Of a stretch of DNA of 64,000 nt, positions 1 to 54,847 are shown piece after piece (within the stretch, counting starts at the first letter, position 1; each line of letters begins with the position of its first letter). A program made the position numbers and the translations under genes. The notes under the pieces are model-generated. The model made no database searches. It saw only the letters and a list, made by a program, of their open reading frames with translations, and was not told the DNA's origin. The stretch comes from Bugula neritina (Eukaryota > Animalia > Bryozoa). Location: assembly GCA_964035545.1 (NCBI GenBank), contig OZ037772.1:6680889-6744888 (forward strand). The letters run 5' to 3'.

Positions 1-2822
1 AACACAAGCTGAGGTGCATCGTCTGCTGAAAGAGGGTCATGTGACTGAGAAGATCAGAGAAAAGAAGAGACTAGCCAAAGAGATGGAAAGGCATGATGTA
101 GAAAATCTGGGTGATTGTAATCTCACTGATCTACCAACCTTAATAGAGACAGGTTTGTGATGTTTTCAATTGACAATTAAGTAACATCTGCCAATTAGTT
201 GGCTCTTTCAAGAAATGACTTGCAAAATGTTATCTCTCTCTCTCTCTTTCTCTCTCCCTTTTTCAGTCAGTCGATGCAAATGTGAATGTTTCACAATTTG
301 GTCTTGAATTTGGTTGCAGCCTTTCACGCAACTCTGTACTGCCAGTGGTCTGTTTTCAGGAACTCAAGTTGATTATTCTCCCTTTCATATTTTTCTTAGC
401 AACATCTTCAAGTCTGAGTCTAAGCTGCCCTCCATTCCTTTTGCCGTTTTTCAGCTGAAAGTGAATCAATTTTCTTCGTAGCTGGCTATCTTCCTTCCTG
501 TGCACATGGCTTACCCGTCTCAGGTTATTTTCAAAAAGAATGTCAGCCATGCTTGGCAAGTTGTAACATCTTAGTATTTCTTCATTCATAACTTTGTCAC
601 ATCATTTTACAGCAAATGTCTCTACTTTGCCGCATCATGAAAGCGCTTAGATTCTTCACCTGTGTCCTTTATAATGTCCATGTTTCTGCTCTATGCAGCA
701 GACCTGAGAACACCATGAAGTGTTCTGTAGACTTTACACTTCACCCTTATAGATACTCGTCTGCTGTTCTAAAGTCTCTGCTGCAATTCTCCGTAAGCCA
801 CACTTGCTTTGTCCAGTCTGTTCCGCAGCCCTTTATCTATTTTTGCCAAACAGGAAACAGTGATTCTTAGATTAGTACAAGTACAGCTGGTTCATCATCT
901 ATTTTGATAACCTCAAGTTAATATGGAGAGTGAATAAGTTTGATTGGCTAGTACATGCATCTACCTTCTGAATGTTGATTTTTTACATTAGTACCTACAT
1001 ACAATATCTTATGTGAGCAGTGAAATACATTTACACACTGTATAAGCTGAAAGATCATTTAGCTATTTCTCTAAAAAGCTGCTAAAGACCCACAACTGTT
1101 AGTCATTACATTTCATGTGTCGCCACCACTGCAAGACAACATAGTTTACTTTAAACCATGTCGATAACTCACTTAACGGTTTGTTTATTGTAGTTGAAAA
1201 ATTAAATTATAAATAAATTATTATTCTTCCTTTGTATGACAAGCACCATAGTCATGCAGTGTGTTAATTTAATACTTCTTAAAAAACCATTACTATGCTA
1301 TATACTATATATGTGCACACATATCACACATATGTACACATACATATACATACACACATACATACATATAATATTATACTGTATATACATAAATACATAA
1401 CATGCATATATACATGTATGCATCTTATATTCACATATAACACACATAAATTGCACATATGAACATATATAATAATTATAGGAGTTACAGACATCTATAA
1501 GCAAAAATGTACAAAACTTATAGAAATTGCATCAGATACCCATCTAATTTTCTTAGTTATAGGTTTATGGTAACTATCATAAAATCAGGAAATATTTTTG
1601 AGCAAATAAATGCTTTCTAATAAAAATTGATTTCTAATAAACAAACTGAATGATTAACTCTATATTTCATCTTACAGGTCAAAACACAAGTAGACTGTTG
1701 AATCTCAGTCTAGTAATAGTTCCTTCTTCACTGAGATTCATATCTGAACATGAGACAAGTATTGGGTGTTACTCAGCCAATCACAGACAAGACGGTGACA
1801 TACTCATAGGTACTTATAATGGAATACAGTTACTGAGCAGAAATAGTAATGAACTGAGTGGATACAGTACAAGTGAGAAGATAGTAACAGGAGTAGTTGA
1901 GACCCTTCAGAATGCATTCATTCTACACAGAGAAGGTGACATATCTAAGGTAGACATGTGTTTAGCTGGTGACATCACAAAGAGACAACAACTGTTTCAG
2001 TTTGATAGAACAGGTAATGGTGCAGCAGTAATGGCAGTCTCTGACAGATATGTTGTGGTGGATCATCCAGATACTAAACAGCTGATCATCTATGATTTCA
2101 TCACTAAACAGACAGAGACTATTCGTCCTGATGTGTATCCACTTGGTCTACACTTTCTACCAGATGGTCATCTGCTAGTAGTTGGTGGAGAAAAACTGAT
2201 CAAGTACAAAGTAGAGAATGGAAAGCTGACTACAGTATGGAGATGTGATGGTGTAACAGATGGATACGGTGTCTGTGCAGATTCTAATGATCTCATCTAC
2301 GTTTCTGGAAGAAGCTTGAAGTTGCTTTACATCATTTCTCCATCAGGTGCGGTTGCTTAAGCATGTGTATGCTGCGAGTAGAAAACTCCAAATATAATTT
2401 CAGAGTTCATCAAAAGTTTTGGAAATAACGAAAAATCTTAGCAAAACATATATTGAAAGTTTTGGAAATACTGTGTTCTGCTGTATCAAATTACTGCGTC
2501 TCCATAATAATATAGTCACATTAAGCTGAAATCTAGGTTTGCGCATTCCCACATTTTTCCCCAATTCACATGCAAACCTTGTCTATAAATTATGAAGTAA
2601 ATTGAGTGCACTTTCGATAAAATTTCTTATAAACCTATTAGGTTTACTTTGTTTACATTGCTAGTGTATATTTGTATATATTAAACAGGTGCTCTTCTCA
2701 AGACACTGACTCATGATAAATTACCATCTATTTTTTCTGGAGTACCGAGTATCAGAGATGGGATACTGGCTGTACCTGGTTGGGATGAGAAAAAGTTGTA
2801 TCTTTTTGAAATAAAAACCTAA
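1..2822 (+). CDS. TRIM-like gene copy A (5' part outside window): coiled-coil exon 2, beta-propeller exon, terminal exon
   Basis: Exons <1-152, 1678-2346 and 2689-2822 have GT-AG boundaries and phase-1 junctions, and read open: ...LIETG|QNTSRLL...IISPSG|ALLKTLTHDKLP...GWDEKKLYLFEIKT*. Exon sizes (669, 134 nt) match copies C and E. Confidence 0.88.
232..900 (-). mobile_element. RTE-clade LINE 3' fragment in intron 5 of copy A
   Basis: Minus-strand translation NEEILRCYNLPSMADIL...LRRVSHVHR...QLKNGKRNGGQLRLRLEDVAKKNMK resembles the RTE C-terminal region. Ends in a (GA)n tail. Absent from the equivalent intron of copy E. Boundaries approximate. Confidence 0.75.
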
Positions 2823-3879
2823 GTAATATGCTAAGCAAATGGTAAACTTGGTTTTTAATATGCTCTATGTTTTACATTTTCATTCATATTGTTCAAAATT
2901 TGGATTTATGGCAAAATTTGTTGCTCTTATAACTGAATGAGTTAGCTTTTCACAAGTCTAATGACATTTTTTAAACATTCGTTATGAATATGGTTTCAAA
3001 AAGTCTGAAAACAGCCAAAAAAAACATTTTTATTATGATTCTTGCCACAAATACTTATCCTTGTTTGATTGATAACGACACATTGAATCGTATCTAATAA
3101 TTATGTTTGTCATGTTGCCTTTTATAGTTAGTCGAGCCTAATCAGAGCCGGTTACCAAAATAATCACTTCCCTAATACATCTTTTTTGCATATATTATAT
3201 TATATAAGTATACTCATATTCAAAAGTTGCTTGTTTAGCGTAACATCCAAGCATGTACACATATCATATTATATTACTATTAAAAAAGTATATTAATATA
3301 CTATATATAGCAGTCTGCTTGTTATAATTATTTACTTCTCAAACAAATTTGAAGTTTTTTTCACAATTTTTTTTAAATATTTGATAAAAACTAAAAAAAA
3401 ATAAAACACACAAGTTTAAAGCTATAGATATGTGGCCATTAATTGTTGTCACTGAGCTAGCTAAAACTATAGCATGTGTTTGCAAATAGTTCTTGTCATA
3501 ACTTATAGTAGACAGAATGTTTGCAACTGTCTATTGCTGCATGTGAATAAGAAATTTATAAAAGAATTTGGCGTTTCCATACATAGTATTAAATAGTTTG
3601 TATAGAAAAGCTGCATTTTAAGACATGGAATACTAACCACTTTATAATCTATAATCTATATGTGATTGCATACAACTAAAATCTTTATACTAATTAATAT
3701 TTAATAATCGAGACTAGCATAGAAGTTTTTCAAGTAGTAAAAGGTGGTAGGTAACTAATATTCACAAACCTTGTCTATAATTAGTTATGAAGTAAATTGA
3801 GTGCACTTTGAAATATTTTTTATAAACATTCCAGTTTACTTTGTTCCCATTGCAGTGTATAGCTGTAAATATTAAACAG

Positions 3880-4010
3880 GCGTTGTTCTCAAGAGACTGA
3901 CTCATGATAAGTTACCAACTGCGTTTGCTGGAGTAACAAGTATCAGAGATGGAATACTGGCTGTACCTGGTTGGGGAGACAAGAAAGTGTATCTGTTCAA
4001 TATGCAGTAG
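3880..4010 (+). CDS. Second, duplicated terminal exon of copy A (candidate alternative last exon)
   Basis: ttaaacag acceptor preceded by ~120 bp of duplicated intron-6 sequence. Same phase, open frame (G)[42 protein letters not shown]. Confidence 0.7.
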
Positions 4011-12083: not shown

Positions 12084-14025
12084 TTTTACATTATTTTTAG
12101 TTTAAAATAGATTGAGTCGCAGATAACTGAATTACAAGAATTGAAAATTTAATTCTGTTTAATGTAATGGATAGGGCATTTCTGTTGATAGAGTATACAC
12201 AACTAAAACAATAATGAGCGGATTGTGGCGAATAATATGTGTTTTCTGTTATGATAGTTTAGAGAAAAATAAAGATGGCTGCCCAGCAACTAACAGAATG
12301 GTATGAGTGTGGTTATTGTGTCTCTAAGAGAGATGACATGAGAGATCCAAGAGAGCTGCCTTGTCAGCATGTATTCTGTTTGAGTTGTATTCAAGGACAT
12401 TACAGTAAACATAGAACTGTGACCTGCCCTATTAACACTTGTGGGTAAGTACTATGTATATACTGATCGTGTCTTTAAAGTACTTATGTTGTAGTAATAC
12501 TATTAACAAAAGAGTTCTTAGTTGTCTTTGTAAATCTATATGTGTTGACTTTGAACTACTTATTGTAAACTTCATGTGCTTACTCTCAGCTAATTTGCAA
12601 AAGACTACAATCTGTGAACTTGGATGTTTAATAATTTTAGGGTTTTACTCAAAATTAAATTTATAAAGATTAAAATTAAAAAGTACATTTTTACACACAT
12701 GCAAACATATTATTATTGTATGAGATTGAAAAGAGGCTTAAATACTACGAAAAACAGATAAGAATGATTTCATCAGTGTCATAGCAAAATTAATTTGTTT
12801 ATACAGGATTGCTAAATTTATTTGCGTATTTTTTTTTCAAAATCTCAACACTAATCAATTTTAGAGAAGTGTATGAATCAATAGAGTTTGAAAGTCTGCC
12901 AAAGATTACCATAGCAGTATGTTACTGTGTGACATGCAAAGACAAGTTCTGTTCTCATCATCAGCAGGTAAAATTATATTCTCTCTTAGTCTCATATAAA
13001 ATAGGGATGTGAGCAAATAGTATTTAAACTATTTATAGTGCATTTTGATAAACAATTTCAGTTTATAGTTATAATTTTGTAACCATATGGAATGGTCATA
13101 TTGAAAATTGAAGTCTGAAATGCAACAGTGGATGAAAAAGTTCTTATGGTAAAATCATTTACTTTTCATTTCACCTTTATATATCAAAAAGATGCTTGTA
13201 TTACAGAGTTGCTCCTCTTGGTTGTTTTAAAACATGTAACTGACCAATTTCTTCTACTAATTGAATTTATAGAAGCGTTTTTTGTTCGTTATATGGAGAT
13301 AGTATATTAAAATAATGCAAAGTAAAGTTGAGTCTATTAAACAGCACTTGTTACTGCTCATCTCTTCATTTAAATGGTTCACTTATACTTATAATCAGCT
13401 GAAAAGAGCATATATTTTAGATTAAAGTTAATGATAATTTTTAATTATGTGTCTAGCTTTTGAAGTGATGCTTTGAAGTTGGAAGCAGAATACATTGTTG
13501 AAAGAAATTGGTCCGTTTTTGAATGTGCACTCCGTAGTAAGTCATTGACTGCACATGACAAATACACTGTAAATTATACAACAATAAGCTAAATGTCTCA
13601 TGTGATCATATACATAGCGCAGACATTTTTTAAAAATATGCTTCTGCTTTTTCAACAACTTTAATAAAGTCACTTCAAAAAAATACTATCTCACATTCTA
13701 GGTGCATCAGACACTTCATAGTGATTCTCACAAGGTCGTGGGCATTGATGTCTACAAGAGATCACCTGCTAGTTATGACAAACCAATATGTGAACATCAT
13801 CAAGAGGTTCTAGTAAAAGCTTGTAAGAAATGTGACAAACTGATCTGCTTTGAGTGTGAGATAGATGGCTATGACTGCACAAGTGAGTAGCGAAGTGTAC
13901 ACATATAAAACAGATAAATTAAACTTAGAGTATTGTTGGTTGCAATACAAATTGATGCCGCTTATTTAAACAAATGAAATTATACTTGACTTTGCTGTTG
14001 TTTTTTTAAAGAATAAGCTAACATA

Positions 14026-14321: not shown

Positions 14322-15198
14322 AATATTTATAAAGTTTAAGTTGTGAGATTTTTCCACCTTTTAATGGTTGTTACAGTTATATTACATGTGCTCAGCCAAC
14401 AACAAATAAAAAAAATACAGCTTATATGTAGACTACTGAATGTCAGTCTAGTAACAGTTCCTTCTTCACTGACATTCATATCTGAACATGAGACAAATGG
14501 TCAGTGTGTGGCAGCTCATCACAGACAAGATGGTGACATACTCATAGGTACTGCTAATAGAATACAGTTACTGAGTAGAGATGGTAATGATCTGAGTGAA
14601 TACAGTACAAGTGAGAAGAGAGTAACAGGAGTGATTGAGACTCCTCAGAATGTCTTCATTCTACACAGAAAAGGTGACGTATCTAAGGTAGAGATGTGCT
14701 TAGCTGGTGACATCACAAAGAGACAACAGCTGTTTCAGTTTGATAGAACAAGTGCTATTGCAGCAGTAATGGCAGTCTCTGACAGATATGTTGTGGTGAA
14801 TCATCCAGATACTGGACAGCTGATCATCTATGACTTTATCACTAAACAGACAGAGACTATTCATCCTGATGTGTATCCACTTGGTCTACACTTTTTACCA
14901 GACGGTCATCTGCTAGGAGCTGGTGGATATAAACTGATGAAGTACAAAGTAGAGAATGGAAAGCTGACTACAGTCTGGACATGTGATGGTGTAACAGATG
15001 GATACAGTGTCTGTACAGATTCTAATGGTCTCATCTATGTTTCTGGAAAATTCCTAAAATCAATTTACATCATTTCTTCATCAGGTACTGCTTGTAATAA
15101 ACGCCAATTAAGATATTTGATGTGGGGAATATAAATATAAAACTTGATGAAAGCTTCTGAATGTAGGAGCTGGCTGAATCAAAGTATATATTGAATAT

Positions 15199-15624: not shown

Positions 15625-17832
15625 ATATGAGGTTGGTGTGAACTCATCTTATGAAGAATGTTAATTTTTTCAATATATTTTTCCTATGACAATATATTAG
15701 ACTCTAGTGTATTCAATACTAATTTTTCTGTATATACTTTACCAATGCTTGATATAGAGGACTAATATAATGTTTGGCTTCCTAGAGTATTGCTCATATA
15801 TGTACAGCATATTATTTTCTTTTGTTATATTATACTTAGTGTAATTCAGCATCATCGTAGTATATTTCTTTATACGTGTATACATGTATTAAACAGGTGT
15901 TCTTCTCAAGAAACTGACTAATAGTAAGCTGCCATCTGAATTTGCTGGAGTACCAAGTATCAGAGATGGAATACTGGCTGTACCTGGTTGGGGAGATGAG
16001 AAAGTGTATCTTTTCAACATGCAGTAGAAACTTCAAGCACTGTAAAGTTGAACAATTCAATAGTTCCTGTTTCAAACAATTATTTATCTGTATTATCCAA
16101 ACCAATTTCTGTCCTCTATCTAAAAATTAATAACTTATATCCTACTGTCACTTCATATATATAAGATTATCAATAATCATTTCGGTGGATAGACAAGTGT
16201 TAATAACAAATTTTATCATAATTACATTTGATAACAATTTCCAAAACAATTCAATTATATTGTCGTGTTTTTGAATTATACAAGATTGTTAACAATTATT
16301 CCTGCAGAAATGTATATTTAATTATACCATTGTCACAACGTTTCAACAGAAAATAATTTCAAATGCTATTATACTCCACCAACTAATATTTTATGCTGGT
16401 TATTTTGCTTGAGTTTTCACTTTTACATTTATTAAAACACTGCTATATAATTTTGAATTTCTATGCATTTATAGACACCATTCATAAATCAAATATGTTA
16501 ACATTGTTGTAATATGTTAAAACATATTTTGTAAAAAAGAAAGATTTTATCTAGTTGACCTTACCAACCATGCATGCACATTAGTTGATATAACTGAAAT
16601 ATGTTGTATTTGTTATAATGAGTAGTATATCTTTACTTGCTAATCTATTTATAAATTGCAAGATTTGTTCTTTCATCAAGCTAAATGATAATATTGTCCA
16701 ATCAAGTTCAGCGGAAAGCTACAATGTTTAAAACAATGCCGAAAAATACAGCAGTATAAATAGAAGTTTGATGCATTTTAAAAAAGTGGAAACATACAGA
16801 TATAAATGCATGTGCTTCTTTCAGCACAGTTTCTTTCTACAATTGCTGAGAACACACAATACCAAGATATATTATATATTATACTACGAAATACCACATT
16901 CTTCAGAAAAGCACAAAAGGGGTTCTATAATAACTATATAAAGTGCATTGGAATTTTTACTGCAAAGCAGTAGCACTAATGGTAGAAATTATTCTGTTAT
17001 AAGTTACCGAAGAATTAGAAATTGTTGTGTTACGATGCCATGCATGAACACATGATTATATTAGCTTGCAGTTCTATGAAGTTTTTTTATTATTGCGTGG
17101 AATTGTTTAAAAAAAGTAAAAAAGCTATTTATATAAATAAACGCTAAATAAAAGTGTAGTTTATTATTTTATAAGCACATGGTAAGCTTTATATAGGCAC
17201 AGTAAAATGTATTTTATTTTTTATCCAATAAATAGTTTGGCTGTGTGTGAAACATGCATAATTCGTGATCATTGGGTGGCTCAAAATATGCAAGATTAGC
17301 TACAGACTAACATAAAATTACAGTTATACATTACATAATTATCAATTGGCAAAAGCTTGCTATAGTAACATCAGTCTTTTTTGCTCATTGTTATACTCAC
17401 AATAGCATAAAAGAACACATTACATATTGTATCATAACATTATTCGACAGATTGAATACAATTATTGTTTTTGGCAACAAGAATACTGAACTGTGGTTAC
17501 TGTAGCTCTCAGCTTGTACTGAATATACAAAGGTTATGCTGTATAATTTATCATTGTCTCAAACAGCTCCTCTTGTATATTTGTAAAGCAGTAACAGCAA
17601 AGCCTTCCATACAGATGCTGAAGAGAAACTAATTGATTTCTTAGGACTCTTATAACTGAATGCTTGCAATTATATACAAAAACATCAATATGTTTTGTAC
17701 AATAAAATTCTAAGCCAGCATTATTACGATCAAAGCTAAACATGATAAATATGGATACAATTTTGCATATTACAAAGTGCAGTGAGTTCAGAGGAGACAA
17801 AAGAACCTACTAGAAGGCAAAAAGTTATTGTT

Positions 17833-20631: not shown

Positions 20632-20843
<212 letters not shown>

Positions 20844-23639: not shown

Positions 23640-24720
23640 AAAATAGCGGGCAGAGCTGTTACCATCCTGCTGGATTCAGGATGTACTACGAACCTTTTGA
23701 GACGCCGACTCTTCGACACACTCAGCATAAAAGACCAGGCGGCCTGGGAATTATGGCATGTTGGCGGACAGGTCATTGATTATTTTGGCATCAATGAGCT
23801 TGCTGGTAGAATTCGATATTAGGCAATTAGTAAGGCATTTATCGTCAGCCAGCTCAAGGAAGACGCTATCCTTGGGAGGAATGCGGGAATAACAGGGAAT
23901 GCCTGATAATGGTGCAGTTACTTAGTGAGGACAAAGACGTGTTCAGCAGGGGGCACCATGACGTGGGCTTGACCAAGACTATCCATCATGAAATTCCTCT
24001 GGCTGCGAAAATGGTCCCAATTCAGCAAGCTAGCTGCGGGTTGGGCTGGGAGAGGAAGAAGGAGGTGAGCCGGTAAGTCCACAACCTTCCGGACCGTGAC
24101 CTGATAGAGCCTGCCCACGGAAGACGCATGTGAGCTGGCAATTTTGTGTGGATTACCACAAGTTGAACAGCGTTACCATACAGGACACATGTCCCTTTCT
24201 GTATTGATGAGTCCCTAGACACTCTGACCGGTAGCAAGTACTTCAGTACGCTAGAATTGCTGAACGGGCACGTGCAGGTGCCTCTCAGTCCTGATGCTCA
24301 GGACAAGATCGAGTTCATCACCAGTGATGGGCTCTAGAAATGGAAATTGTTACCATTTGGGTTCACCTCAGCTCCGGCAGTGTTTTAAAGACTCATGGAG
24401 TAGGTTCTTAGTGAGCTGCACTGGGAAACCTTGCTCATCTACCTTGATGACATCATCATGATCTCCCCAGAATTTACGACTCACTTCAGCGATTTGTGAG
24501 AAGTTTCCGAGAGGCTTCGAGGAGCCGGTCTAAAACTGAAACTTTCCAAGTGCGCTCTGTTACAGCTGGAGGTTAAATAACTGGGCTATGTTGTTGGCCG
24601 GGACAGTGTAGCTACCGACCGCGATAGGGTGCGGGCAGTGGAAAACTGGGCTACCCCTTAGTATCTCACAGGACTACATCTTTTCCTGGGGCTAGTAGGT
24701 ACCACCGGCAGTGCATACTG
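23640..24720 (+). pseudogene. pol: Gypsy pol remnant (aspartic protease + reverse transcriptase)
   Basis: DSG protease motif. IDESLDTLTGSKYFSTLEL...KLLPFGFTSAPAVF*RLME*VL...LLIYLDDII. RNase H and integrase mostly missing. Confidence 0.88.
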
Positions 24721-27439: not shown

Positions 27440-27618
27440 AAAATAGATAAAATGAAACTGGTTGTCACTCCCCGTGCCATTTGTTCACTTAGCTACGCGC
27501 TACTCCAGTATAACTATCTACTGTAGCTATACTGCACCACTTCACTACTTACTGCTCTATAGCACATGTAGCCACCTAATAGCTACTCTATCATTTCATA
27601 TAACAAAGTTGGGTAAAG
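27440..27618 (+). promoter_or_regulatory. Module M5, closest module to the ATG exon of copy C
   Basis: GATAAAATGAAACTGG, ctccagtataactatctactg body, GG|GTAAAG donor at ~27613. Confidence 0.45.
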
Positions 27619-34200: not shown

Positions 34201-34880
34201 TAAACAGACAGAGACTATTCATCCTGATGTGTATCCAGTTGGTCTACACTTTCTACCAGATGGTCATCTGCTAGGAGTTGGTGGAGGTAAACTGATAAAG
34301 TACAAAGTAGAGAATGGAGAGCTGACTACAGTCTGGACATGTGATGGTGTAAAATGTGGATACAGCGTCTGTAATGATTCTACTGGGCTCATCTATGTTT
34401 CTGGATTGAACTTGAAGTTGCTTTACATCATTTCTCCATCAGGTGCTGTTGCTTAAGCATGTGTATACTTCGAGTGGAAAACTCTAAATATAATTTCAGA
34501 GTTTATCAAAAGTGTTAGAAATGTCGAAGATTATTAGCAAAACCTATATTGAAAGTTTTTGAAATACTTTCTCCATAATATAGTCACACTGCTGAAATCT
34601 ATTTTTGGGTACCCCCACATTTTTCATATAATTCACAAATCTTGTCTATAAATTATGAAGTAAATTGCTTGCACTTTGATATTTTTTTATAAACTTTCCA
34701 GTTAAGTTTGTTTTCATTGCAGTGTATATTTGCATATATTAAACAGGTGTTCTTCTCAAGAAACTGACTCATGATAAGTTACCAACTGAATTTGGTGGAA
34801 TACCGAGTATCAGAGATGGAATACTGGCTGTACCTGGTTGGGAAGAAAAGAAGTTGTATCTTTTTAAAATAGAAACCTAA
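28291..34880 (+). CDS. TRIM-like E3 ligase copy C (RING-Bbox1-Bbox2-coiled coil-six-bladed NHL-like propeller), 594 aa, intact
   Basis: Exons 28291-28454, 28862-29021, 29946-30126, 30740-30939, 31768-32044, 33774-34442 and 34747-34880 total 1785 nt, all GT-AG and in frame. RING CGYC-x14-CQH-x2-CLSC-x12-CPTC. B-boxes CTAHGC...CYCVKC...FCTQH and CENH...[13 protein letters not shown]. Blades such as [13 protein letters not shown] and [15 protein letters not shown]. Confidence 0.93.
29180..29740. repeat. Compound (CA)n/(CGCA)n microsatellite with three copies of tagtatatgaattatac in intron 2 of copy C
   Basis: Directly visible. Confidence 0.95.
33412..33496. repeat. Hairpin at the end of a probable hAT-like non-autonomous element in intron 5 of copy C
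   Basis: cccatacgggcgtatggcctagaa / ttctaggccatacggcgtatggg near-perfect inverted repeat, then a ...CCCTG terminus. The region ~32075-33496 has no counterpart in the introns of other copies. Confidence 0.45.
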
Positions 34881-36389: not shown

Positions 36390-36550
<161 letters not shown>

Positions 36551-36802: not shown

Positions 36803-39800
36803 AGAAGTGTGTGACTCACTGGAGTTTGAAGGTCTGCCAAAGGTTACCATAGCAGCTAGTGACTCTAATACTCTGTTCTGTACAGCTTGTGAATGTCAAG
36901 GTCAAATAGCTACATGTTACTGTGTGACATGCAAAAACAAGTTCTGTTCTCAGCATCAGCAGGTAAGAGAATATTCTCACTTTACTCCATTTTGTATATA
37001 TAGGGCACAGAAGAAATAGTATTTAAAAACTATTTATAGTGCATTTTGATAAAATATTTGAGGCTATGGTTATAATTTTGTAAAAATGTTGATAGGCCAT
37101 GTTAAAAATTAAAGTCCGGAATGTAACAGCAAATAAAGAAGTTTTTTATTTCCCATTTCACCTTTATAACAAAAATTGTTTACATAGAGAATTACTCTTG
37201 ACCGTTGTTTCAAAACTTATATTTAAACTGACTAAAGTTTTCAATATTCAAATCAGAGAATTTTTTTCTCTTCCAAATGTATAAGAGTTATATTTTAACA
37301 ATAAGCAAAGTTAGGTTGAGTCCATCAAACAGCATTTTTTTCTGCTTATATATCTTTATTTAAATTCTTTGCATATCAGCTGAAACAAGTATCTTTTAGA
37401 TGAAATTTGTTTTTTAATTTTGTATGAAATGTTTAGCTTCTACAGCATATGATGCTTTAAGAGGTTTCAAGCAGAATACATCTTTGACAGAATTTGTTCT
37501 ATTATTGAACGTGCACTGAGTTATAGTAAGTCATTGACCGCACATGACAATTACGCAGTGCAAATTATACAATACACATAATGTGTCAAGTGATCATATA
37601 AGTATAGCACAGGCGTTAAAAAAAGAAGTTTGGTTTCTAACATCGTTACTAAAACTACCTCAGAAAATGTTATCTTATCATTCTAGGCACACAAAACACT
37701 TCACAATGATGTTCACAAAGTGGTGGACATTGACGTCTACAAGAGATCACCTGCTAGTTATGATAAGCCGACTTGTGAACATCATCAAGAAGTTCTAGTA
37801 AGAGCTTGTCAGAAATGTGACAGACTGATTTGCTTTGAGTGTGAGATTGATGCAGAAGACTGCACAGGTAATATTTGGTAATTCACTGTTGAAAAATTGT
37901 TTCTAAAGAACACTTTTCACTGAGGTGTATCACTACATTCACAAAACTTCGAATAGATCAGTACGGGTGCTGATATGTATGTATTTGTGATTGCAGTTTG
38001 TATTAACTTATAGTTCTGGCTTCAATAGGTGCAACTGCTTTCAAACTATGCAAAAAAAAAAAATTCCATAATTTGAAGCTTCAAATTGCAGTGATGCTTT
38101 AAACCACTCAGCTATCCTTTGTTTTCTAATGATAATATGACAAGTTTTCACATGAGCTTGTAAACACAAAATGATCAACAATTTAGTCCTCAAAGTAAAA
38201 ATGGTTTTGCTTATCTTTTAAGATCAGTCAGTATCTTTATGTATCCATGAGAATTTTTTAAATTTTTGAACACTTATTTTATTTATTCATTGATTATTAC
38301 TCTTAATCACTTGAACAAAGCTCATACACTGTCATTTTATAATTAAATAATATTTTCCAGTTTCAACATCTGACTGAACAAAAAATAACTCACCACTTGA
38401 GAGTCTATATTGTTGTTAATTGGTTATAGCAAATGTGGAGTTTATTCTAAACTATAATGTACAATGCAATGGGCTACGCAAATGTAAGATTAAACAACAA
38501 TTTAGTAAACGTATAACAGATAACTGCTGCCCGATCTTAATTTAATTAAATGATAATTGTGACTTACAATTTAAAATAACTTAGTACCCCGGAAAAGTTC
38601 CTATTGAATTTTGACTCAATAGAAAGTCAAGTTATTGTATGATCAATAAATCTGCAACAATATAACAAGGAAATATTTTATTTTGGTGCTTACCGAAAAC
38701 AAACTTTGCTTGGTGAAATTTACATATGTTCAATGCTTTAGACTGTTTTGAAACACTGCATTACGTAATCAAATCAAAACTTTAGATCAAGAAAGACATG
38801 AGTTTAAATCTCTTACATCACTGAAGGAAGAGGTGAACACCTACATTTCCAGTCAGCTGAAAGTAATTGTTGAAAATATTACCAAGATATGTTCTTTGGA
38901 CAAGAAGGTGTGGAATGATCTTGATGATCAAAAAGAGAAATGTTCATATGTCATAAGAGAGATAGAGACAATTAGAAATGAAATGGTGAGTTTGTCAGTT
39001 AACTGCCTTTCACATATCATTGCTTGTTTTAAGTCTCATCACAATCATCACAGAATTATTTACAGTATTCAATTAGCTAGTATTGAAATTGCCTGGAAAC
39101 CACAACCATCATCATAATTATTTTCATGTTTATGAGAGCAGTCAACAAACGAGTTGTATAGTAATTTTATAAATTAAATTATGGTTTGTTCAAAAAGGAA
39201 AATATTTCAAGACATGCAGAGTATGTATAATATCACATTAGTTTCTATTTTGAAAGTAATAAATAAGCAAAGGAATTATCTTTCAATCCGTTTCTGCTTT
39301 AAGTATCTTTTACAGAAAATCAGAAGTTACTTTCTTACAAGTGCTGCGGATGAAAATAAATTTAAGTTATTTAAGGTCCAAATATTTTTTAACACGACAG
39401 CTATATAATATTCCTATCTGAGTTTTAAATGTTTATATATTGGGCTCAAAAATTTCTGCTTTTAGATCCAAAGAATAACTAATGAGAGTCAAAAGCTGAT
39501 TGACAGAGTTATCAATCACAAAGAAGAAGTGACCAATCAGGTGGAAGATTTCTACAACAAGCTGATGCTGAAGAAAGATGGGTTGGAGAAAACACAAGCT
39601 GAGGTGCATCGTCTGCTGAAAGAGGGTCATGTGACTGAGAAGATCAGAGAAAAGAAGAGACTAGCCAAAGAGATGGAAAGGCACGATGTAGAAGATCTGG
39701 GTGATTGTAATCTCACTGATCTACCAACCCTAATAGAGACAGGTTTGTGATGTTTTTAATTGACAATCAAAGAACATCTGCCAATTAGTTGGATCTTTCA

Positions 39801-42800
39801 AAAAATGACTTGCAAAATATTCTCTCTCTCTTTCTCCCTCTCTCTCTCTCTCTTTCAGTCAGTCGATACAAATGTGAATGTTTCTCAATTGGTCTTAAAT
39901 TTGGGTGCAGTTCTTCACGCAACTCTGTTGTCAGTGGTCTAGCTGTTTCCAGGAACTCAAGTTGATTGATCTCCATTTCATATTCCTCTTAGCAACATCT
40001 GTAAGTCTGAGTCTAGGCCACCCTCTTTTCCTTTTGCGATCTTTCAGCTGAAAGTAGAGCAATTTTCTTGGTATAACCGGCTAGCTTCAATCATGTGCAC
40101 ATGGCTTACCCATCTCAGGTTCTTTTTTATAAGGATGTCAGCCATGCTTGGCAAGTTGTCACGTCTTAGTATTTCTTCATTCAGAACTTTGTCATACCAT
40201 TTTACAGCAAATGTCTCCAATTTGCCGTATCATGCAAGCGCTTAGCTTCTTCACCTGTATCCTTTATAATGTCTATGTTTCTGCTCCATACAGCAAACCT
40301 GAGAACATCATGAAGTGTTTTGTAGACTTTACACTTTACCCTTATGGATACACGTCTGCTGTTCTGAAGTCTCTGCTGCAATTTTCCGTAAGCCACACTT
40401 GCTTTGCCCAGTCTGTTCCGCAGCTCTTTATCTATTCTTGCCAAACAGGAAACAGTGCTTCCTAGATTAGTACAAGTACAGCTGGTTCATCATCTGTTTT
40501 AGTAACCTCTGGTTTATATGGAGAGTAAATAAGTTTGATTGGCTGGTACATGCATCTACCTTCTATAAATGTTGATTTTTTATATTAGTACCTATACATA
40601 CAAGATCTTATGTGAGCAGCGAAATACATTTACACACTGTATAAGCTGAAAGATCATTTAGCTATTTCTCTAAAAAGCTGCTATAGACCCACAACTGTTA
40701 GTCATTACATTTTATGTGTAGCCACTACTTCAAGACAACAGATTTTACTTTAAATCATGATGATAACTCACTTAACGGTTTGTTTATTGAAGTTGAAAAA
40801 TTAAATTATAAATAAATTATTATTCTTCCTTTGTATGACAAGCACCATAGTCATGCAGTCTGTTAATTTAATACTTTATAACAAACCATTACATGTATTA
40901 CTATGATGTACTATATATGTGCACACATATCACACATATGTACATGCATACACACACATACATATAATATTATACTGTATATACATAAATACATCACATG
41001 CATATATACATGTATGCATCTTATATTCACATATAACACACATAAATTGCACATATGAACATATATGATAATTATAGGAGTTACAGACATATAATATAAG
41101 CAAAAATGTACAAAACTTATAGAAATTGCATCAGATACCCATCTAATTTTCTTAGTTATAGGTTTTTGGTAACTATATCATAAAATCAGGAAAAATTTTT
41201 GAGCAAATAAATGCTTTCTATAATAAAAAATTATTTCTAAGGAACAAACTAAATTATTTACTCTATATATCATCTTACAGGTCAAAACACAAGTAGACTG
41301 CTGAACATCAGTCTGGTAACAGTTCCTTCTTCACTGACATTCATATCTGAACATGAGACAAGTGATTGGTGTTACTCAGCCAATCACAGACAAAATGGTG
41401 ACATACTCATAGGTATTGAAAATGGAATACAGTTACTGAGTAGAGATGGTAATGAGGTGAGTGAATACAGTACAAGTGAGAAGAGAGTAACAGGAGTGAT
41501 TGAGACTCCTCAGAATGTCTTCATTCTACACCGACAAAGTGACATAGATAAAGTAGACATGTGTTTAGCTGGTGACATCAGAAAGAGACAACAGTTGTTT
41601 CAGTTTGATAGAACAAGTAGTATTGTAGCATTCATGGCCGTCTCTGACAGATATGTTGTGGTGAGGAATCCAGATACTAAACAGCTGATCATCTATGACT
41701 TCATCACTAAACAGAAAGGGACTACTCGTCCTGATGTGCTTACACGTGGCATACACATTTTACCAGATGGTCATCTGCTAGGAGTTGGTGAAGATAAATT
41801 GAATAAGTACAAAGTAGAGAATGGAAAGCTGACTACAGTCTGGACATGTGATGGTTTAACAGATGGATACAGTGTCTGTACAGATTCTAATGGTCTCATC
41901 TATGTTTCTGGAAAATTCCTAAAATCAATTTATATCATTTCTTCATCAGGTACTGCTTGTAATAACAACCAATTAAGATATTTGATGTGGGAAATATAAA
42001 TATAAAACCTGGTGAAAGCTTCTGAATGTAGGGGCTGGCTGAATCAAAGTACATATTGAATATGAGTCATTTCACTTCATTTAGTACAAATCAGCAGATT
42101 GTGATTACCTAACATTAAAGTTTGTCCAAAATATATTAAAATTTACCATACATGATGTTTTGTGAACCAGTTCTAATTACATGCATAACAGAAAAGACTG
42201 AAAGAGGATTTCCCAACATTAAAGCAGCAGTCATTATTATATGCACTAAATGTTTTCTTTGTGCAATTGTCCCAAAAACTGTGACATTCGCAAATCCAAG
42301 CTACCTAAATAATTGGGAAAAAACATGGGAAATTAAGCAAAATTAAAAGCAACCTTGATTATTCATTTGTATTTATGAATAGGCTATTAGTTTTGAGTGC
42401 AAACCCATATATATACATAAATAGCAAATAAATTGGGAAAAATAGCTAAAAACTGGAGATTTCGAATCCCTAAACTTAATAAAATGACCCATATGAGGTT
42501 GGTGTGAACTCATCTTGTGAAGAATGTTAATTTTTTCAATATATTTTTTCTATGACATTATATGGGACTTTAGTGTATTCATTACTAATTGTTCTGTATT
42601 TATTTTACCTATGTTTGCCTATAGAAGCCTAATATAATGTTTTGCTTCACAGAGTATTGCTCATATATGTACAGCATATTATTTTCTTTTGTTATATTGT
42701 ACTTAGTGTAATTCAGCATCATCGTAGTATATTTCTTTATACGTGTGTATACATGTATTAAACAGGTGTTATCCTCAAGAAACTGACTCATAGTAAGCTG

Positions 42801-42896
42801 CCATCTGAATTCGCTGGAGTACCAAGTATCAGAGATGGAATACTGGCTGTACCTGGTTGGGGTGATAAGAAAGTGTATCTTTTCAATATGCAGTAA
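36803..42896 (+). CDS. TRIM-like gene copy D lacking promoter and RING exon; remaining six exons intact
   Basis: Exons 36803-36962, 37687-37867, 38786-38985, 39466-39742, 41281-41949 and 42766-42896 have canonical sizes (160, 181, 200, 277, 669, 131), GT-AG sites and no stops. No MAAQ/RING exon upstream. May be a pseudogene. Confidence 0.8.
39822..40500 (-). mobile_element. RTE-clade LINE 3' fragment in intron 5 of copy D (same insertion as in A)
   Basis: ARIDKELRNRLGKASVAYGKLQQRLQNSRRVSIRVKCKVYK on the minus strand, with a (GA)n tail. Confidence 0.78.
42064..42490. mobile_element. MITE in intron 6 of copy D (same insertion as in B)
   Basis: GAGTCATTT...AAAATGACCC with ATAT TSD. Confidence 0.8.
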
Positions 42897-48234: not shown

Positions 48235-51200
48235 ATGGCTGCCCAGGAACTACCAGAATGGTATGAGTGTGGTTATTGTATCTCTAAGAGGGATGACATG
48301 AGAGATCCAAGAGAGCTGCCTTGTCAGCATGTATTCTGTTTGAGTTGTATTCAAGGACATTACAGTAAACATAGAACTGTGACCTGCCCTATTAACACTT
48401 GTGGGTAAGTACTATGTATATACTGATCGTGTCTTTAAAGTACTTATGTTGTAGTAATACTATTAACAAAAGAGTTCTTAGTTGTCTTTGTAAATCTATG
48501 TGTGTTGACTTTGAACTACTTATTGTAAACTTCATGTGCTTACTCTCAGCTAATTTGCAAAAGACTACAATCTGTGAACTTGAATGTTTAATAACTTTAG
48601 GGTTTTACTCGAAATTAAATTTATAAAAATTATAATTAAAAAGTACATTTTTACACACATGCAAATATATTATTATTGTATGAGATTGAAAGGAGGCTTA
48701 AATACTACGAAAAACAGATAAGAATGATTTCATCAGTGTCATAGCAAAATTAATTTGTTTATACAGGATTGCTAAATTTATTTGCGAATTTTTTTTTCAA
48801 AATCTCAACACTTATCAATTTTAGAGAAGTGTATGAATCAATAGAGTTTGAAAGTCTGCCAAAGATTACCATAGCATCTGGTGACTCTAATACTCTGTTC
48901 TGTACAGCTCGTGAATGTCAAGGTCAAATAGCAGTGTCTTACTGTGTGACATGCAAAGACAAGTTCTGTTCTCATCATCAGCAGGTAAAATTATATTCTC
49001 TCTTAGTCTCATATAAAATAGGGATGTGAGCAAATAGTATTTAAACTATTTATAGTGCATTTTTATAAACAATTTGAGTTTATAGTTATAATTTTGTAAC
49101 CATATGGAATGGTCATATTGTAGTAGATTTGTGGGTTATAGAATGAAATCAGGCAGAGAACATAACTCCTTGCTATAAAAGAGACAAGAGAGGTGTGACT
49201 TCGTGTGTGTATAGTGATCTTTATTATAACAAAGATGTATACAGCTCAGACTCCAGCGCTGAAGTGCTGAGCTGGGCAAAAAACGCGTGCTTTTATACTA
49301 ACAAAAGACGGGGATTTGGGCCTTTCAGAACATTCCATCGACAGCGGAGCCAATATTCGGCAGGGGTACCAACATTCGTCGTGTCGGTTACCGACATTCG
49401 TCGTGTCGGTTACCGACACTGGACATGTCGGTAACCGACATTCGGTCTGCCTGTAGCCACCTGCCGATATCGGTACATCTGTCGGTTTACAAGTATAAAG
49501 AAAAGGATCAACCAAGAGTATTGTAATAAGTTATTGTTGTAAGAATAAAGAAAAGGGTAAACCATAAGTATTATAATAACTGAGACTGTGTCTGTAATAC
49601 TAGTTATGGGAATGGGGCAAAGGGGGATAACTTGATATCTAGATATTTACTACAATATTAAAAATTGAAGTCTGAAATGCAACAGTGGATGAAAAAGTTC
49701 TTTTGGTAAAATCATTTACTTTTAATTTCACCTTTATATATTTAAAGGATGCTTGTATTACAGAGTTGCTCCTCTTGGTTGTTTTAAAACATGTAACTGA
49801 CCAATTTCTTCTACTAACTGAATTTATAGAAGCGTTTTTTTTGTTCGTTATATGTAGATAGTATCTTAAAACAATGCAAGGTAAAGTTGAGTCTATTAAA
49901 CAGCACTTGTTACTGCTCATCTCTTCATTTAAATGGTTCACTTATACTTATAATCAGCTGAAAAGAGCATATACTTTAGATTAAAGTTATTGTTAATTTT
50001 TAATTATGTGTCTAGCTTTTGAAGTGATGCTTTGAAGTTGGAAGCAGAATACATTGTTGAAAGAAATTGGTCCATTTTTGAATGTGCACTCCGTAGTAAG
50101 TCATTGACTGCACATGACAAATACACTGTAAATTATACAACAAGCTAAATGTCTCATGTGATCATATATATAGCGCAGACATTTTTTAGAAATATGCTTC
50201 TGCTTTTTCAACAACTTTAATAAAGTCACTTCAAAAAAATCCTATCTCACATTCTAGGGGCATCAGACACTTCATAGTGATTCTCACAAGGTCGTGGGCA
50301 TTGATGTCTACAAGAGATCACCTGCTAGTTATGACAAACCAATATGTGAACATCATCAAGATATTCTTGTGAGAGCTTGCAAGAAATGTGGCAAACTGAT
50401 CTGCTTTGAGTGTGAGATAGATGGCTATGACTGCACAAGTGAGTAGCAAAGTTTACACACGTAAAACAGATAAATTAAACTGAAAGTATTGTTGGTTGCA
50501 ATACAAATTGATGCCGCTTATAATGAAATTATACTTGACTTTGCTGTTGTTTTTTTAAAGAATAAGCTAACATAGTGTAATGGATTCTCATCCTCTATTA
50601 GTTCTGAAATAACTGCGCTTATTGTAATTACTGTTGCGTATCGTTTTGAATTCTGTAATTGTAGTAAGCTAGCTTGCTAATGCCCAATTATTGTGATTAC
50701 TGTTAAAGCTTTCAACATAATGTAATTTTGCTGAAATATGCATTCCGGGGTTATTTTCTTTTGCGTTGCTATTTTATCGTTTTGCATTAATACTGATACT
50801 GGACATTTGTGGTCCGAGTTTCGGCTCTGGCAAATTTTGGAGCTGCCAAATTTCGGACCACAAAAGATCTTTTGTCTACATGTTATTTTGTTCTCTGTGT
50901 ATAAAAGCAGGCGAGTTCCAGTGTAGAATCAGTCTACTACTTATAGAGCTCGCCTGGGTAAGTCAAAGTTATTTCTGCTACAATAAAACATTTTGAACTC
51001 TTCTACCTCAACTTTTCTTGTTCTGCACTAAGTTACATTCAACCCACAAGTTTATCACAATATTTATAAAGTTTAAGTTGTGAGATTTTTCCACCTTTTA
51101 ATGGTTGTTACAGTTATATTACATGTGCTCAGCCAACAACAAATAAAAAAAATACAGCTTATATTTCGATTAAGCAACAATTTCATTCCAAATTCCTATG

Positions 51201-54200
51201 TGATGAATTATTTTGTGTATTGCATTTAAAATAATACTTAGCTGTAATTGGTAACTGACAAAATACTAATAATGAGGTAAATAAGCCTTGCATCCTAACT
51301 TCTCTCTCATAATTTATAACTTGACGTGATTTACTTGCCTAATTATTTGATCACTCATTTTTTTTAAGAAATGTGTAATATATGTTATACTGGTCTAATA
51401 GGTCTTTTGGGCTGTAAAAAGCTGAACATAAAAACATATAGTAGTCATGGGCTTCATGCGCATTATGGGTATCCAAACTAAAGCTTCTATGTAGTTGCAG
51501 CTACAATTATTTAAATACTGAAAATTTAACTAGTAATGTATTTTCTATATGCAGATCAAGAAAAACATGATTTCAAATCTCTCACATCACTGAAGGAAGA
51601 GGTGAACACCTACTTTTCCAGTCAGCTGAATGTAATTGCTGAAAAGATTACCAAGATTAGTTCTTTGGACAAGAAAGTTTGGAATGATCTTGATGATCAA
51701 GAAGAGAAATGTTCAGATGTTATAAGAGAGATCGAGACAGTTAGAAATGAGATGGTGAGTGGTTAGTTGTAGTTTCTTTTTGTGATTCATTTTTAAAACA
51801 CCAACATTTTTGAAAGTGTATGTATCCTCAAATGATTAAACTTTAGAAAAAAATTTAGGTCAACACTAACAATGTGTAATAAATTTAATATCGCTATCTT
51901 GCGTATTTATATATATTCTCATTAGGTATTTAAAATCCGTAATAGCTATATACAACTTCACACAAGTTTGGCTTACAAAACAAAGTGATAATAAAGTATT
52001 TGTAATAGTATATTTTGCATCTTTTTAATATATAACAATTATTGTTGATATGTTCTTGAAAATTGATTACCATATGATACTATATTCTAAAATTAGACAG
52101 CAACACTTATAAAATACAGGAATAAATGCTTCATACATGTACTAGAATGCAGAATTTATTTGTGACAACTAAAAAACTATTCCATGTTAGCCAATAAACT
52201 AAATTGAAAGTTTTGTGGGTGAAAACAAAAGTATCTTCAGTGAACCCAAACAAACTTTTCTCAAAAAACTCTTAGTCGGAAACTAATCTAGAAATGTAAA
52301 AATTCAAATTAAAAATTTCACTCCAAGAGATTTTTCATTTTTGCTAAATATTTTCAAAACAGACAGGAAGGCAAGTGTGAATATTAAAATAATTATTTTT
52401 CACTAAAAATTAAAACTTTTTGCGATTAAAAAACTTTTCTTTGAACTGATCAAAATTTGCCATATAAAGTTTGAGCTTAAAACAAGCTGAAAATGTAATT
52501 AAGTCAAAATGCGTTCATATAAACATATAAACCAATTAAATTGTTTTTTGAAATGCATATCTTGTTTACACAGCAGCAACATTTTAGATCCAAAGACTAA
52601 CTAATGAGAGTCAAGAGCTGATTGACAGAGTTACAAACCACAAGGCTAAGGTGACCAATCAGGTGGAAGATTTCTACAACAAGCTGATGCTGAAGAAAGA
52701 TGGATTGGAGAAGACACAAGCTGAGGTACATTGTCTGCTGAAAGATGGTCATGTGACTGAGAAGATCAGACAGAAGAAGAGAGTAACAGAAGAGATGATC
52801 AGACATGATGCAGATAAACTGGGTGATTGTGAACTTGTTGATCCACCAACTGTAATAAATACAGGTTTGTGACGTTCTTTTTGAAAATATCTTGGCTATA
52901 ACAATCAGAAAACATCTGCCAATTAGTTGGCTCTCTCAAAATGATGACTTACCAAACTTTATTACAGTAGATTATAAACAATAAAGTAGGATGTATATTA
53001 TATCACTACCTACATACAATTATATGCTGTGGGCAGCAAATTACATTTGCACACTATATATGCTGAAAGACCATAATTATTTCTCAAAGAAGCTGCTAGA
53101 GACCTACAACTGTTAGTCATTACATTTCATGTGTAGCCTCTACTGCAAGACAATAACCTTTACTTTAAACCATGTTGATAACCCAATTTACAGTTTGTTT
53201 ATTGAAGTTAAAAAGTTAAAGTATGAATATATTATTATTCCTTCTTTGTATGACAGTCAAACACCATAGTCATGCAGTGTGTTAAATTAATACTTTATAA
53301 CAAACCATTACATGTATTACTATGTTATACTATATACGTGCGCACATATCACACACATATATAGATGCATACATACACACATACATACTGTATATAGACA
53401 TATACATGGCAGGCATATATACATGCATGCATATTACATGCATGCATATTAAATGCACATATAACATACATAAATTGCGCATATTATAGACATATATAAT
53501 CTTTATAGTTTTTACAGGCATATATAAGCAAAAATGTACGAAACTTGTGGCAATTTTATCAGATAATCATCTCATTTTCTTAGTTATAGGTTTATGCTGA
53601 CAGAAATAAAATTAGGAAACATTTGTGAAAAAATAAAATTATGCTTTCTGATGAAAATTGATTTTCAATAATTGTACTTAATGACTAACTATATATTATA
53701 TCTTAATGTCACAACGCAGGTCAAAACGCAAGTAGACTACTGAATGTCAGTCTAGTAACAGTTCCTTCTTCACTGACATTCATATCTGAACATGAGACAA
53801 GTAGGTGGTGTTACTCAGCCAATCACAGACAAGATGGTGACATACTCATAGGTACACAGAATGGAATGCAGTTACTGAGTAGAGAGGGTAATGAGCTGAG
53901 TGAATACAGTACAAGTGAGAAGAGAGTAACAGGGGTGATTGAGACTCCTCAGAATGTTTTCATTCTGCACAGAGAAGGTGACATAGATAAGGTAGAGATG
54001 TTTTTAGCTGGTGATATCACAAAGAGACAACAACTGTTTCAGTTCGATAGAACAAGTACTGTTGCAGCAGTAATGGCAGTCTCTGACAGATATGTTGTGG
54101 TGAATCATCCAGATACTAAACAGCTGATCATCTATGACTTCACCACTAAACAGACAGAGACTATTCATCCTGATGTGTATCCAGTCGGTCTACACTTTCT

Positions 54201-54847
54201 ACCAGATGGTCATCTGCTAGAAGTTGGTGGAAATAAACTGATAAAGTACAAAGTAGAGAACGGAGAGCTGACTGCTGTCTGGACATGTGATGGTGTAACA
54301 GGAGGATACAGTGTCTGTACAGATTCTAATGGTCTCATCTATGTTTCTAGAAGAAGATTGAAGTTGCTTTACATCATTTCTCCATCAGGTACGGTTGCTT
54401 AAGCATGTGTATGCTGCGAGTAGAAAACTCTAAATATAATTTTAGAGTTCATCAAAAGTGTTTGAATTGTTGAAAATTATTAGCAAAACATATTTTGAAA
54501 GTTTTTGAAATACTGTTTCTGCTGCATCAAATTACTGTCTCCATAATATAGTCACACTGCTGAAATCTAAGTTTGTGTATCCCCACATTTTTTCACATAA
54601 TTCACACACCTTGTCTATAAATTATGAAGTAAACTGAGTGCACTTTGATATTGTTTTAAACCTTCCAGTTAACTTTGTTCCCAAGGCAGTGTATATTTTT
54701 AAATATTTGACAGGCGTTATTCTCAAGACATTGACTCATGATAAGTTACCAACTTGTTTTGCTGGAGTACCGAGTATCAGAGATGGAATACTGGCTGTAC
54801 CTGGTTGGGGAGACAAGAAATTGTATCATTTTGAAATAGAAACCTAA
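48235..54847 (+). CDS. TRIM-like E3 ligase copy E (RING-Bbox1-Bbox2-coiled coil-propeller), 596 aa, intact
   Basis: Exons 48235-48404, 48825-48984, 50258-50438, 51555-51754, 52588-52864, 53720-54388 and 54714-54847 total 1791 nt, GT-AG, in frame, MAAQELPEWYEC...KLYHFEIET*. Confidence 0.93.
49119..49654 (-). mobile_element. Solo LTR (536 bp) in intron 2 of copy E
   Basis: TGTAGTA...TACTACA ends, ATAT TSD, empty site in copy B at ~13100. TATAAAA and AATAAA on the minus strand. Internal gtcggttaccgac repeats. Confidence 0.88.
50576..51059 (+). mobile_element. Solo LTR (~484 bp) in intron 3 of copy E
   Basis: TGTAAT...ATCACA ends, imperfect TSD ATAG/ATAT, TATAAAA at ~50900 and AATAAA at ~50982. 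Confidence 0.68.

Follow-up and report, generated by a model that had tools for sequence, protein, structure and literature searches.

A tandem array of TRIM-NHL-like RING ligase genes with loop-variable propellers in the bryozoan Bugula neritina

The stretch of DNA analysed here, referred to as the window, comprises 64,000 nucleotides of Bugula neritina (contig OZ037772.1 of assembly GCA_964035545.1, positions 6,680,889 to 6,744,888) and has the base composition of AT-rich animal DNA (28–35% GC). Searches by tblastn with exon-sized open reading frames (ORFs) located five plus-strand paralogs of one gene, designated A to E, in tandem between positions 1 and 54847. The encoded proteins are TRIM-NHL-like: an N-terminal RING and two predicted B-boxes are followed by a long helix and a six-bladed propeller, and amino-acid replacements in the propeller are concentrated in loops on one of its faces. 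An initial annotation, made from the sequence alone, had described five paralogs in a tandem array with identical exon sizes and phases, mosaic introns and two damaged copies, and all of these features were recovered in the gene model presented below.

Five genes of one seven-exon family

Each gene consists of seven coding exons of 170 or 164, 160, 181, 200, 277, 669 and 134 or 131 nt (Table 1), with exon 1 measuring 164 nt in copy C and 170 nt otherwise. Exon phases are the same in every copy, and all junctions in the final model are of the AG..GT type. Evidence for splicing came from run X1, an RNA-type 'symbiont metagenome' library, whose contigs were placed on copy E and mark three joints: 48985>50261 (exons 2 and 3), 50436>51555 (exons 3 and 4) and 51754>52627. 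The last of these departs from exon 4 through the strong donor ATG/GTGAGT and lands in a presumed intron, in what is the 277-nt exon 5, a coiled-coil exon (52588–52864 in E) that is conserved in C, D and A. Translated, the seven exons tile a protein of Watersipora subatra (XP_067933727, here P0132; 619 amino acids) from end to end, the exon 4/5 boundary included, and the splice between exons 6 and 7 is also present in the B. neritina protein P0004. Earlier models with five and six exons, which used a weak donor (G/GTTAGT at 51761) and gave open frames of 466 and 506 amino acids, were overturned by the RNA joints together with the Watersipora protein. An apparent 'lost donor' of copy D was likewise an artefact of the superseded gene model.

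The copies differ in their state of preservation. Copies C (28291–34880, 594 amino acids) and E (48235–54847, 596 amino acids) are intact, with zero internal stops, and copy A is truncated by the start of the window, its exons 5 (in part), 6 and 7 being open. The two damaged copies are B, through two deletions, and D, through the absence of its RING exon. Exon 2 of copy B has lost 57 nt in frame, and with them the first Cys pair of B-box1, and a further deletion in this copy, of 2.56 kb (corresponding to E 51165 to about 53731), eliminates exons 4 and 5 as well as the acceptor of exon 6 and the first 12–13 nt of that exon. In copy D, homology to E begins inside intron 1, directly after a (TA)79 tract that has the 3' flank of C upstream of it. 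Exons 2–7 of D are open throughout, but the copy is unable to make a protein alone, since no ATG precedes exon 5. The donor of C exon 1 (28454) and the acceptor of D exon 2 (36803) are compatible in phase, and a transcript joining the RING of C to the body of D is possible in principle.

Relationships between the copies shift along the gene. Between its 5' flank and the end of intron 3, copy B shares 93–98% identity with E (intron divergence K = 0.024–0.026); in intron 6, in exon 7 and over 4.2 kb of 3'-flanking DNA its partner is D. Exon 5 and intron 5 of copy A go with those of D (K = 0.085), its first exon 7 and the adjoining flank go with C and E, and intron 4 of C goes with that of E. The mosaicism thus includes flanks as well as introns and, as read from the sequence, is the trace expected of unequal crossing-over and gene conversion within an array. 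Copy A also carries two open, splice-competent last exons, one for each type of 3' flank, with an apparent recombination junction near 3760.

The region is repetitive, which is all that speaks for collapsed or duplicated haplotypes as the source of the array. The exons of the copies differ by 5–25% and their introns by more, intron lengths and lesions are distinct, and different transposons intervene between the copies; with such divergence of exons and such differences in intron length, the copies are not an assembly duplication. Moreover, independent DNA contigs from run X2 are identical to copy E. The probability of an assembly artefact is accordingly taken to be negligible.

Table 1. Positions in the window of the exons of copies A–E and of the microsatellite between C and D
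Copy	Feature	Position	Strand	Remarks
A	exon 5 (second coiled-coil exon), 5' part beyond window start	1..152	+	98% amino-acid identity to D exon 5; open; GT donor
A	exon 6 (propeller blades 1–5 and part of 6), 669 nt	1678..2346	+	AG..GT; open; 91% DNA identity to E
A	last exon, version 1 (C/E type, ends ...FEIKT)	2689..2822	+	
A	last exon, second version (B/D type, ends ...FNMQ)	3880..4010	+	where two kinds of 3' flank meet
B	exon 1 (RING)	12275..12444	+	97.9% DNA identity to E exon 1
B	exon 2	12865..12967	+	57-nt in-frame deletion
B	exon 3 (end of B-box1, B-box2)	13702..13882	+	
B	exon 6 remnant	14428..15084	+	
B	exon 7 (D type)	15897..16027	+	
C	exon 1 (RING)	28291..28454	+	last Cys pair C-x2-C
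C	exon 2	28862..29021	+	
C	exon 3	29946..30126	+	
C	exon 4 (coiled coil a)	30740..30939	+	
C	exon 5 (coiled coil b)	31768..32044	+	
C	exon 6 (propeller)	33774..34442	+	
C	exon 7	34747..34880	+	
C/D	(TA)79 microsatellite	36392..36550	.	junction of C 3' flank and 5'-truncated D
D	exon 2	36803..36962	+	no exon 1 upstream
D	exon 3	37687..37867	+	
D	exon 4	38786..38985	+	
D	exon 5	39466..39742	+	
D	exon 6	41281..41949	+	
D	exon 7	42766..42896	+	
E	exon 1 (RING)	48235..48404	+	above Pfam cut-offs; last Cys pair C-x4-C
E	exon 2 (linker and first half of B-box1)	48825..48984	+	RNA joint 48985>50261
E	exon 3 (rest of B-box1, B-box2)	50258..50438	+	zf-B_box 22.3 bits; RNA joint 50436>51555
E	exon 4 (coiled coil a)	51555..51754	+	donor ATG/GTGAGT; RNA joint from 51754
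E	exon 5 (coiled coil b)	52588..52864	+	overlooked by ORF-only model; aligns to P0132 251–342
E	exon 6 (propeller)	53720..54388	+	carries the family's hypervariable codons
E	exon 7 (rest of blade 6)	54714..54847	+	exon 6–7 splice also in P0004

A RING, two predicted B-boxes, a long helix and an NHL-type propeller

The N-terminal part of the protein is probably of the RBCC (RING, B-box, coiled coil) type. Exon 1 of copy E scored 32.6 bits with zf-RING_UBOX, 29.9 bits with zf-RING_2 and 28.1 bits with zf-C3HC4, all of them above the Pfam cut-offs, and the N-terminal C3HC4 RING by which TRIM/RBCC proteins are recognised is present with all eight zinc ligands. The last Cys pair of the RING occurs in two forms in the window, both of which recur in loci of the B. 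neritina draft assembly: C-x4-C, resulting from six extra nucleotides, in B (12428–12444) and E (48388–48404), and the canonical C-x2-C in C (28444–28454), which is also the form found in Watersipora. B-box2, encoded by exon 3, scored 22.3 bits in copy E against a zf-B_box cut-off of 24.1, and the Cys/His patterns of the B-boxes are present. Residues 11–172 of P0132, the stretch to which exons 1–3 of the window align, match the RING-B1-B2 part of TRIM28 with E = 5e-9. In the structural model of P0132 a continuous helix occupies residues 185–298 (predicted local distance difference test, pLDDT, 80–94) and a second helix residues 301–318. Exons 4 and 5 of the window align to residues 178–342 of this protein, and their 158-residue stretch includes only two prolines and three glycines, with 37% of residues charged. 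This modelled helix, some 115 residues long, is probably the coiled coil of the TRIM architecture.

Between the coiled coil and the propeller no filamin/Ig domain was matched in Pfam, and some 25–35 residues separate the last helix from the first strand. TRIM32 and Brat are likewise not known to contain a filamin domain. No SPRY domain was matched by Pfam in any copy or relative, the C-terminus being the propeller. Reading of the sequence (no predictor was run) revealed neither a signal peptide nor a membrane segment, and the predicted N-terminus leads directly into the RING. The genes do form a polymorphic-looking multigene family in a colonial animal, as determinants of allorecognition, that is, of colony self and non-self, might be expected to, and such a role was one of the alternatives named in the initial annotation. 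However, nothing ties them to fusion or rejection, and since the protein begins with the RING and all of its identified domains are cytosolic TRIM modules, a role in allorecognition at the surface is very improbable.

P0004, P0132 and pieces of exons stood in for the spliced proteins of the window in the searches and in folding. AlphaFold2, supplied with 84 aligned relatives, returned a six-bladed propeller of 24 strands with a pLDDT of 96.2, in agreement with the propeller proposed in the initial annotation. In an exhaustive structural comparison with 48,161 chains, the five best matches were all NHL domains, namely those of Brat (Z = 26.1), Mei-P26 (25.9), TRIM2 (25.8), Lin41 (25.3) and TRIM71 (24.4), with a root-mean-square deviation of 2.7–3.0 over 233–245 residues. 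Other six-bladed propellers trail the NHL domains by less than 2 Z units, for example PknD with 24.4. Generic WD40 propellers, which ranked first by E-value when Foldseek was run against the PDB, were displaced by NHL domains in the exhaustive alignment. Searches with the family profile recovered the NHL domains of TRIM3, TRIM2, Thin and TRIM71 (6e-21 to 4e-15), that of Brat and also a repetitive WD40 protein. By language-model features, the nearest clusters of the ESM Atlas (score 0.95) are mostly molluscan, and 52–96% of their members have a Pfam NHL match; this likeness is one of features only, and such clusters are absent among the 150 best profile hits. The combination of RBCC modules with an NHL-like fold and no filamin domain identifies the product as a TRIM-NHL-like ligase that has no filamin domain.

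Clustered at 90% identity, the proteins matched by the propeller exon form 81 clusters, and every named one is a 'hypothetical protein' entry of B. neritina with at most 85% identity. Five loci (L001–L005) of the B. neritina draft GCA_010799875.2 contain the same seven-exon genes at 80–92% DNA identity to the window. When 1.84 billion representatives were searched by profile, 381 clusters at 50% identity were found with E <= 1e-3; a search of metagenome contigs with the propeller profile gave nothing usable. The sole full-length annotated relatives found are those of Watersipora: P0132, which has the same architecture throughout and along which the window exons lie in order, and its kin P0106 and P0234. 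RefSeq has automatically named P0132 'E3 ubiquitin/ISG15 ligase TRIM25-like', a label that is wrong for its C-terminus, since there is no SPRY domain. Propeller identity is 30–35% to the Watersipora relatives, as opposed to 55–85% among Bugula paralogs, from which it follows that there are no one-to-one orthologs between the two and that the expansions are lineage-specific. A search of the literature on TRIM-NHL expansions in bryozoans and other invertebrates found no relevant paper; in two candidates, PMC8382680 and PMC12257675, 'trim' refers to sequence trimming only.

Variation in the genes and in their spacers

Amino-acid identity between the copies is 89–95% in the RING exon, 62–97% in the B-box1 exon, 77–92% in the B-box2 exon, 68–98% in the coiled-coil exons and 76–85% in the propeller. 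The near-constancy that had been ascribed to the entire RING/B-box/coiled-coil part therefore holds for the RING exon only and fails for the B-box and coiled-coil exons, whose divergence equals that of the propeller exon but is of another kind. The ratio of nonsynonymous to synonymous rates (ω) is 0.15–0.5 in the N-terminal exons, with synonymous divergence (dS) of up to 0.8, and 0.5–0.9 in the propeller exon, with a dS of 0.13–0.21. Homogenisation specific to the propeller exon was considered as a cause of its low dS and was dropped, as the flanking introns are similarly diverged (K = 0.12–0.30).

Differences in the propeller fall into about twelve short patches. Loops were delimited by means of the model's DSSP string and sorted by parity; because successive loops of a four-stranded blade alternate between the two faces, all odd loops lie on one face. 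The loop variability reported in the initial annotation takes the form of an excess of replacements in these odd loops, where ω was 1.55 among the window copies, 1.30 among ten copies compared pairwise and 1.29 for ten copies on a tree. The corresponding values were 0.39, 0.41 and 0.39 for even loops and 0.41, 0.57 and 0.58 for strands, and odd loops differ from the rest with P = 1.6e-5 (Fisher). Hypervariable sites were defined from 34 other Bugula paralogs (25 positions with an entropy of at least 1.5 bits), which keeps the choice of sites independent of the data tested. At these 25 sites the five copies of the window gave an ω of 2.44 (P = 0.015), or 2.9 when measured against the exon-wide dS (P = 5e-8), compared with 0.46–0.47 at the remaining 182 positions. 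The result stands when pseudogene B is left out and when ten copies are used, with ω of 2.4–3.3 (P = 0.015–0.03 with the sites' own dS and <=6e-6 with the exon-wide dS) and 0.46–0.58 elsewhere. Twelve of the 14 most variable positions fall in odd loops, and in exon 6 of copy E the hypervariable codons start at 53806, 53857, 53923, 54058, 54061, 54184, 54232, 54301, 54349–54355 and 54364. A conserved motif, D-x-G plus a hydrophobic strand, has a register that fits NHL repeats at their a-b loop and b strand. On the modelled fold this register would make the odd loops the d-a and b-c loops of the top face, which is the ligand face of Brat and LIN-41.

The same observations bear on the main alternative, according to which the proteins are diversified RNA-binding regulators. 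Like Brat, LIN-41/TRIM71 and Mei-P26, each paralog would bind RNA with the top face of its NHL domain, and the expansion would serve the recognition of many endogenous or transposon RNA motifs in post-transcriptional control and not that of pathogens. Their closest folds are RNA-binding NHL domains, their sequence profile matches the NHL domains of TRIM2, TRIM3, TRIM71 and Brat, and the variable loops would, from the motif register, lie on the face that those proteins use. RNA-binding NHL faces are basic, however, and the isoelectric point of the propeller, which at 6.0–7.8 refers to the whole domain and not to the face, is mildly against such a function. An ω above 1 is unusual for housekeeping regulators, and the canonical TRIM-NHL genes form a small set with one-to-one conservation (Marin 2012, PMC3503706). 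This explanation, which would have its mechanism in common with a recognition repertoire and differ in purpose, is considered possible but unlikely.

Transposon insertions and microsatellites fill the spacers. Between A and B, an intact minus-strand ORF of 356 amino acids (7243–8313) encodes a Mutator-like transposase (PF20700, 4.4e-49), and a Thr/Pro-rich ORF of 82 amino acids (8378–8626) lies directly upstream on the same strand; the element may have been active recently. The B–C spacer includes a GC-rich block (22000–28000; 39–47% against about 30% around it) that holds short ORFs only. Eight of these had no match in Pfam, a weak hint of a retroviral-type aspartyl protease was seen at 23385–23822, and the block is probably a decayed retroelement. 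Besides the (TA)79 tract at the C/D junction, microsatellites comprise (AT)104 at 20635–20841 and a CA-rich array in intron 2 of C (29183–29729). Downstream of E, a tandem repeat spans 55660–62540; portions of its unit, which measures about 2.1 kb, recur in the flanking DNA 3' of A, B and D. Stretches of introns 2 and 3 of E (49070–49269 and 50470–51069) attract a very high depth of contigs in both the RNA-type and the DNA runs and are probably high-copy repeats or transposon fragments. Searches of the window for tRNAs and against Rfam gave no matches.

Immune-type motifs had also been claimed for the spacers, a claim that did not survive counting. The kB-like pattern GGGRNNYYCC has 12 matches in the window against about 1 expected, a count inflated by palindromes that score on both strands and in overlapping registers. 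The matches reduce to two independent palindromic places, one at 10075 and the other a single site copied with the tandem repeat, each unit of which carries the palindrome GGGAATTCCC (56994, 59089, 61172). A pattern resembling the interferon-stimulated response element (ISRE) was found once against 0.57 expected, which is the level of chance. Neither the kB-like nor the ISRE-like motifs are evidence on function.

The state of the copies and their spacers could also be read as a largely neutral segmental amplification, in which unequal crossing-over would enlarge and erode the array, most copies would be dispensable, and loop variation would reflect relaxed constraint together with patchy gene conversion instead of selection for diversity. 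Two of the four copies that can be judged (B and D) are damaged, the spacers are laden with insertions and microsatellites as described, and ω does not exceed 1 significantly when the loop class is taken as a whole. Nevertheless, purifying selection is evident from ω of 0.4–0.58 in strands and loops of the other face and of 0.15–0.5 in the B-box and coiled-coil exons, and C and E keep about 595 codons open. Values of 2.4–3.3 at independently chosen sites are, moreover, beyond the reach of relaxation alone, and a neutral origin of the pattern appears improbable.

A putative recognition repertoire and its comparison with known TRIM families

Taken together, the window is considered to represent, with a probability of roughly 0.6, a segment of a large birth-and-death array of TRIM-NHL-like RING E3 ligases in which one face of the propeller has been diversified by positive selection as a recognition repertoire. 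The initial annotation had proposed a birth-and-death RBCC family with a propeller in place of SPRY, acting in antiviral restriction or self/non-self recognition. Its architecture, its history of duplication, recombination and decay and the excess of ω on one face were all found, and an immune role, in the form of an intracellular recognition repertoire, is plausible by analogy. Under our working definition of a germline-diversified family, both tandem turnover and, by the counting method used, ω above 1 on the presumed ligand surface were observed. In the mechanism proposed, a cytosolic RING E3 ligase composed of a RING, two B-boxes, the long helix and the six-bladed NHL-type propeller would be encoded by an array that turns over through tandem duplication, unequal crossing-over, gene conversion and decay. 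The variable top face, formed by the d-a and b-c loops, would bind a ligand as it does in canonical NHL domains; each paralog would recognise a different ligand and bring the RING to it; and the repertoire would be kept diverse by fast-evolving ligands such as viruses, transposons or resident microbes.

Several points weigh against a diversified recognition repertoire. (i) The RNA contigs differ from copy E by about 10% and stem from transcripts of paralogs, so that transcription is seen for the family and not for the five copies of the window. (ii) The structures were modelled on a B. neritina paralog (82% identical) and the Watersipora relative rather than on the window proteins. (iii) The C-terminal 265 residues match no Pfam family above its cut-off, NHL itself reaching only E = 0.65. 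(iv) The propeller as a whole is near neutral or acidic, compared with the basic RNA-binding face of Brat. (v) An ω above 1 for the entire odd-loop class is not significant (P = 0.125). (vi) The selection tests are counting methods that use parsimony on a single tree, although the copies recombine. (vii) The assignment of the variable loops to the top face is based on strand parity and the NHL motif register, not on coordinates.

In vertebrates, tandem lineage-specific RBCC arrays that contain pseudogenes and recombinants, and in which positive selection is restricted to surface loops of the C-terminal recognition domain, are known for mammalian TRIM5alpha and TRIM22 and for the finTRIM and bloodthirsty-like genes of teleosts (van der Aa et al., as cited within PMC3503706). 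The diversified Bugula family would apply the logic of TRIM5 and finTRIM to an NHL propeller instead of SPRY. To our knowledge, no interferon system is on record for bryozoans. In the comparison with class IV TRIMs, which have a B30.2/PRY-SPRY domain, the tandem array, loop-confined selection, pseudogenes and recombinant copies are alike, whereas the recognition domain here is an NHL-type propeller. The same domain order is found in the TRIM-NHL proteins (class VII, or subfamily C of Marin 2012), which include TRIM2, TRIM3, TRIM32, TRIM71/LIN-41, Brat, Mei-P26, Thin and NHL-2. The Bugula family differs from these in having no filamin/Ig domain and a Pfam NHL score below threshold, in its dozens of tandem copies as opposed to three to five conserved orthologs, and in a presumed ligand face that is hypervariable, with a whole-domain isoelectric point that is not basic.

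Vertebrate intrinsic immunity is characterised by lineage-specific TRIM arrays that undergo diversifying selection and in which recognition, as far as is known, always goes through SPRY. In Bugula, a lophophorate, this pattern of evolution is seen on an NHL propeller, a domain otherwise known from developmental regulators, where it is conserved and binds RNA. Otherwise similar paralogs differ in 12 loops, which constitute a natural mutagenesis series for binding by the NHL face. A more specific and quite tentative proposal is that the family, with its positively selected top face, is a germline-encoded set of sensors that distinguish foreign RNA (or protein) by sequence or structure and are individually coupled to a ubiquitin ligase; if so, it would amount to an intracellular 'restriction factor library' of an invertebrate, based on a fold for which no such use is known. 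Should these proteins recognise foreign molecules at all, the array would represent an independent invention of a TRIM-based restriction repertoire and a candidate system for bryozoans, animals whose immunity is almost unknown and whose symbionts are vertically transmitted.

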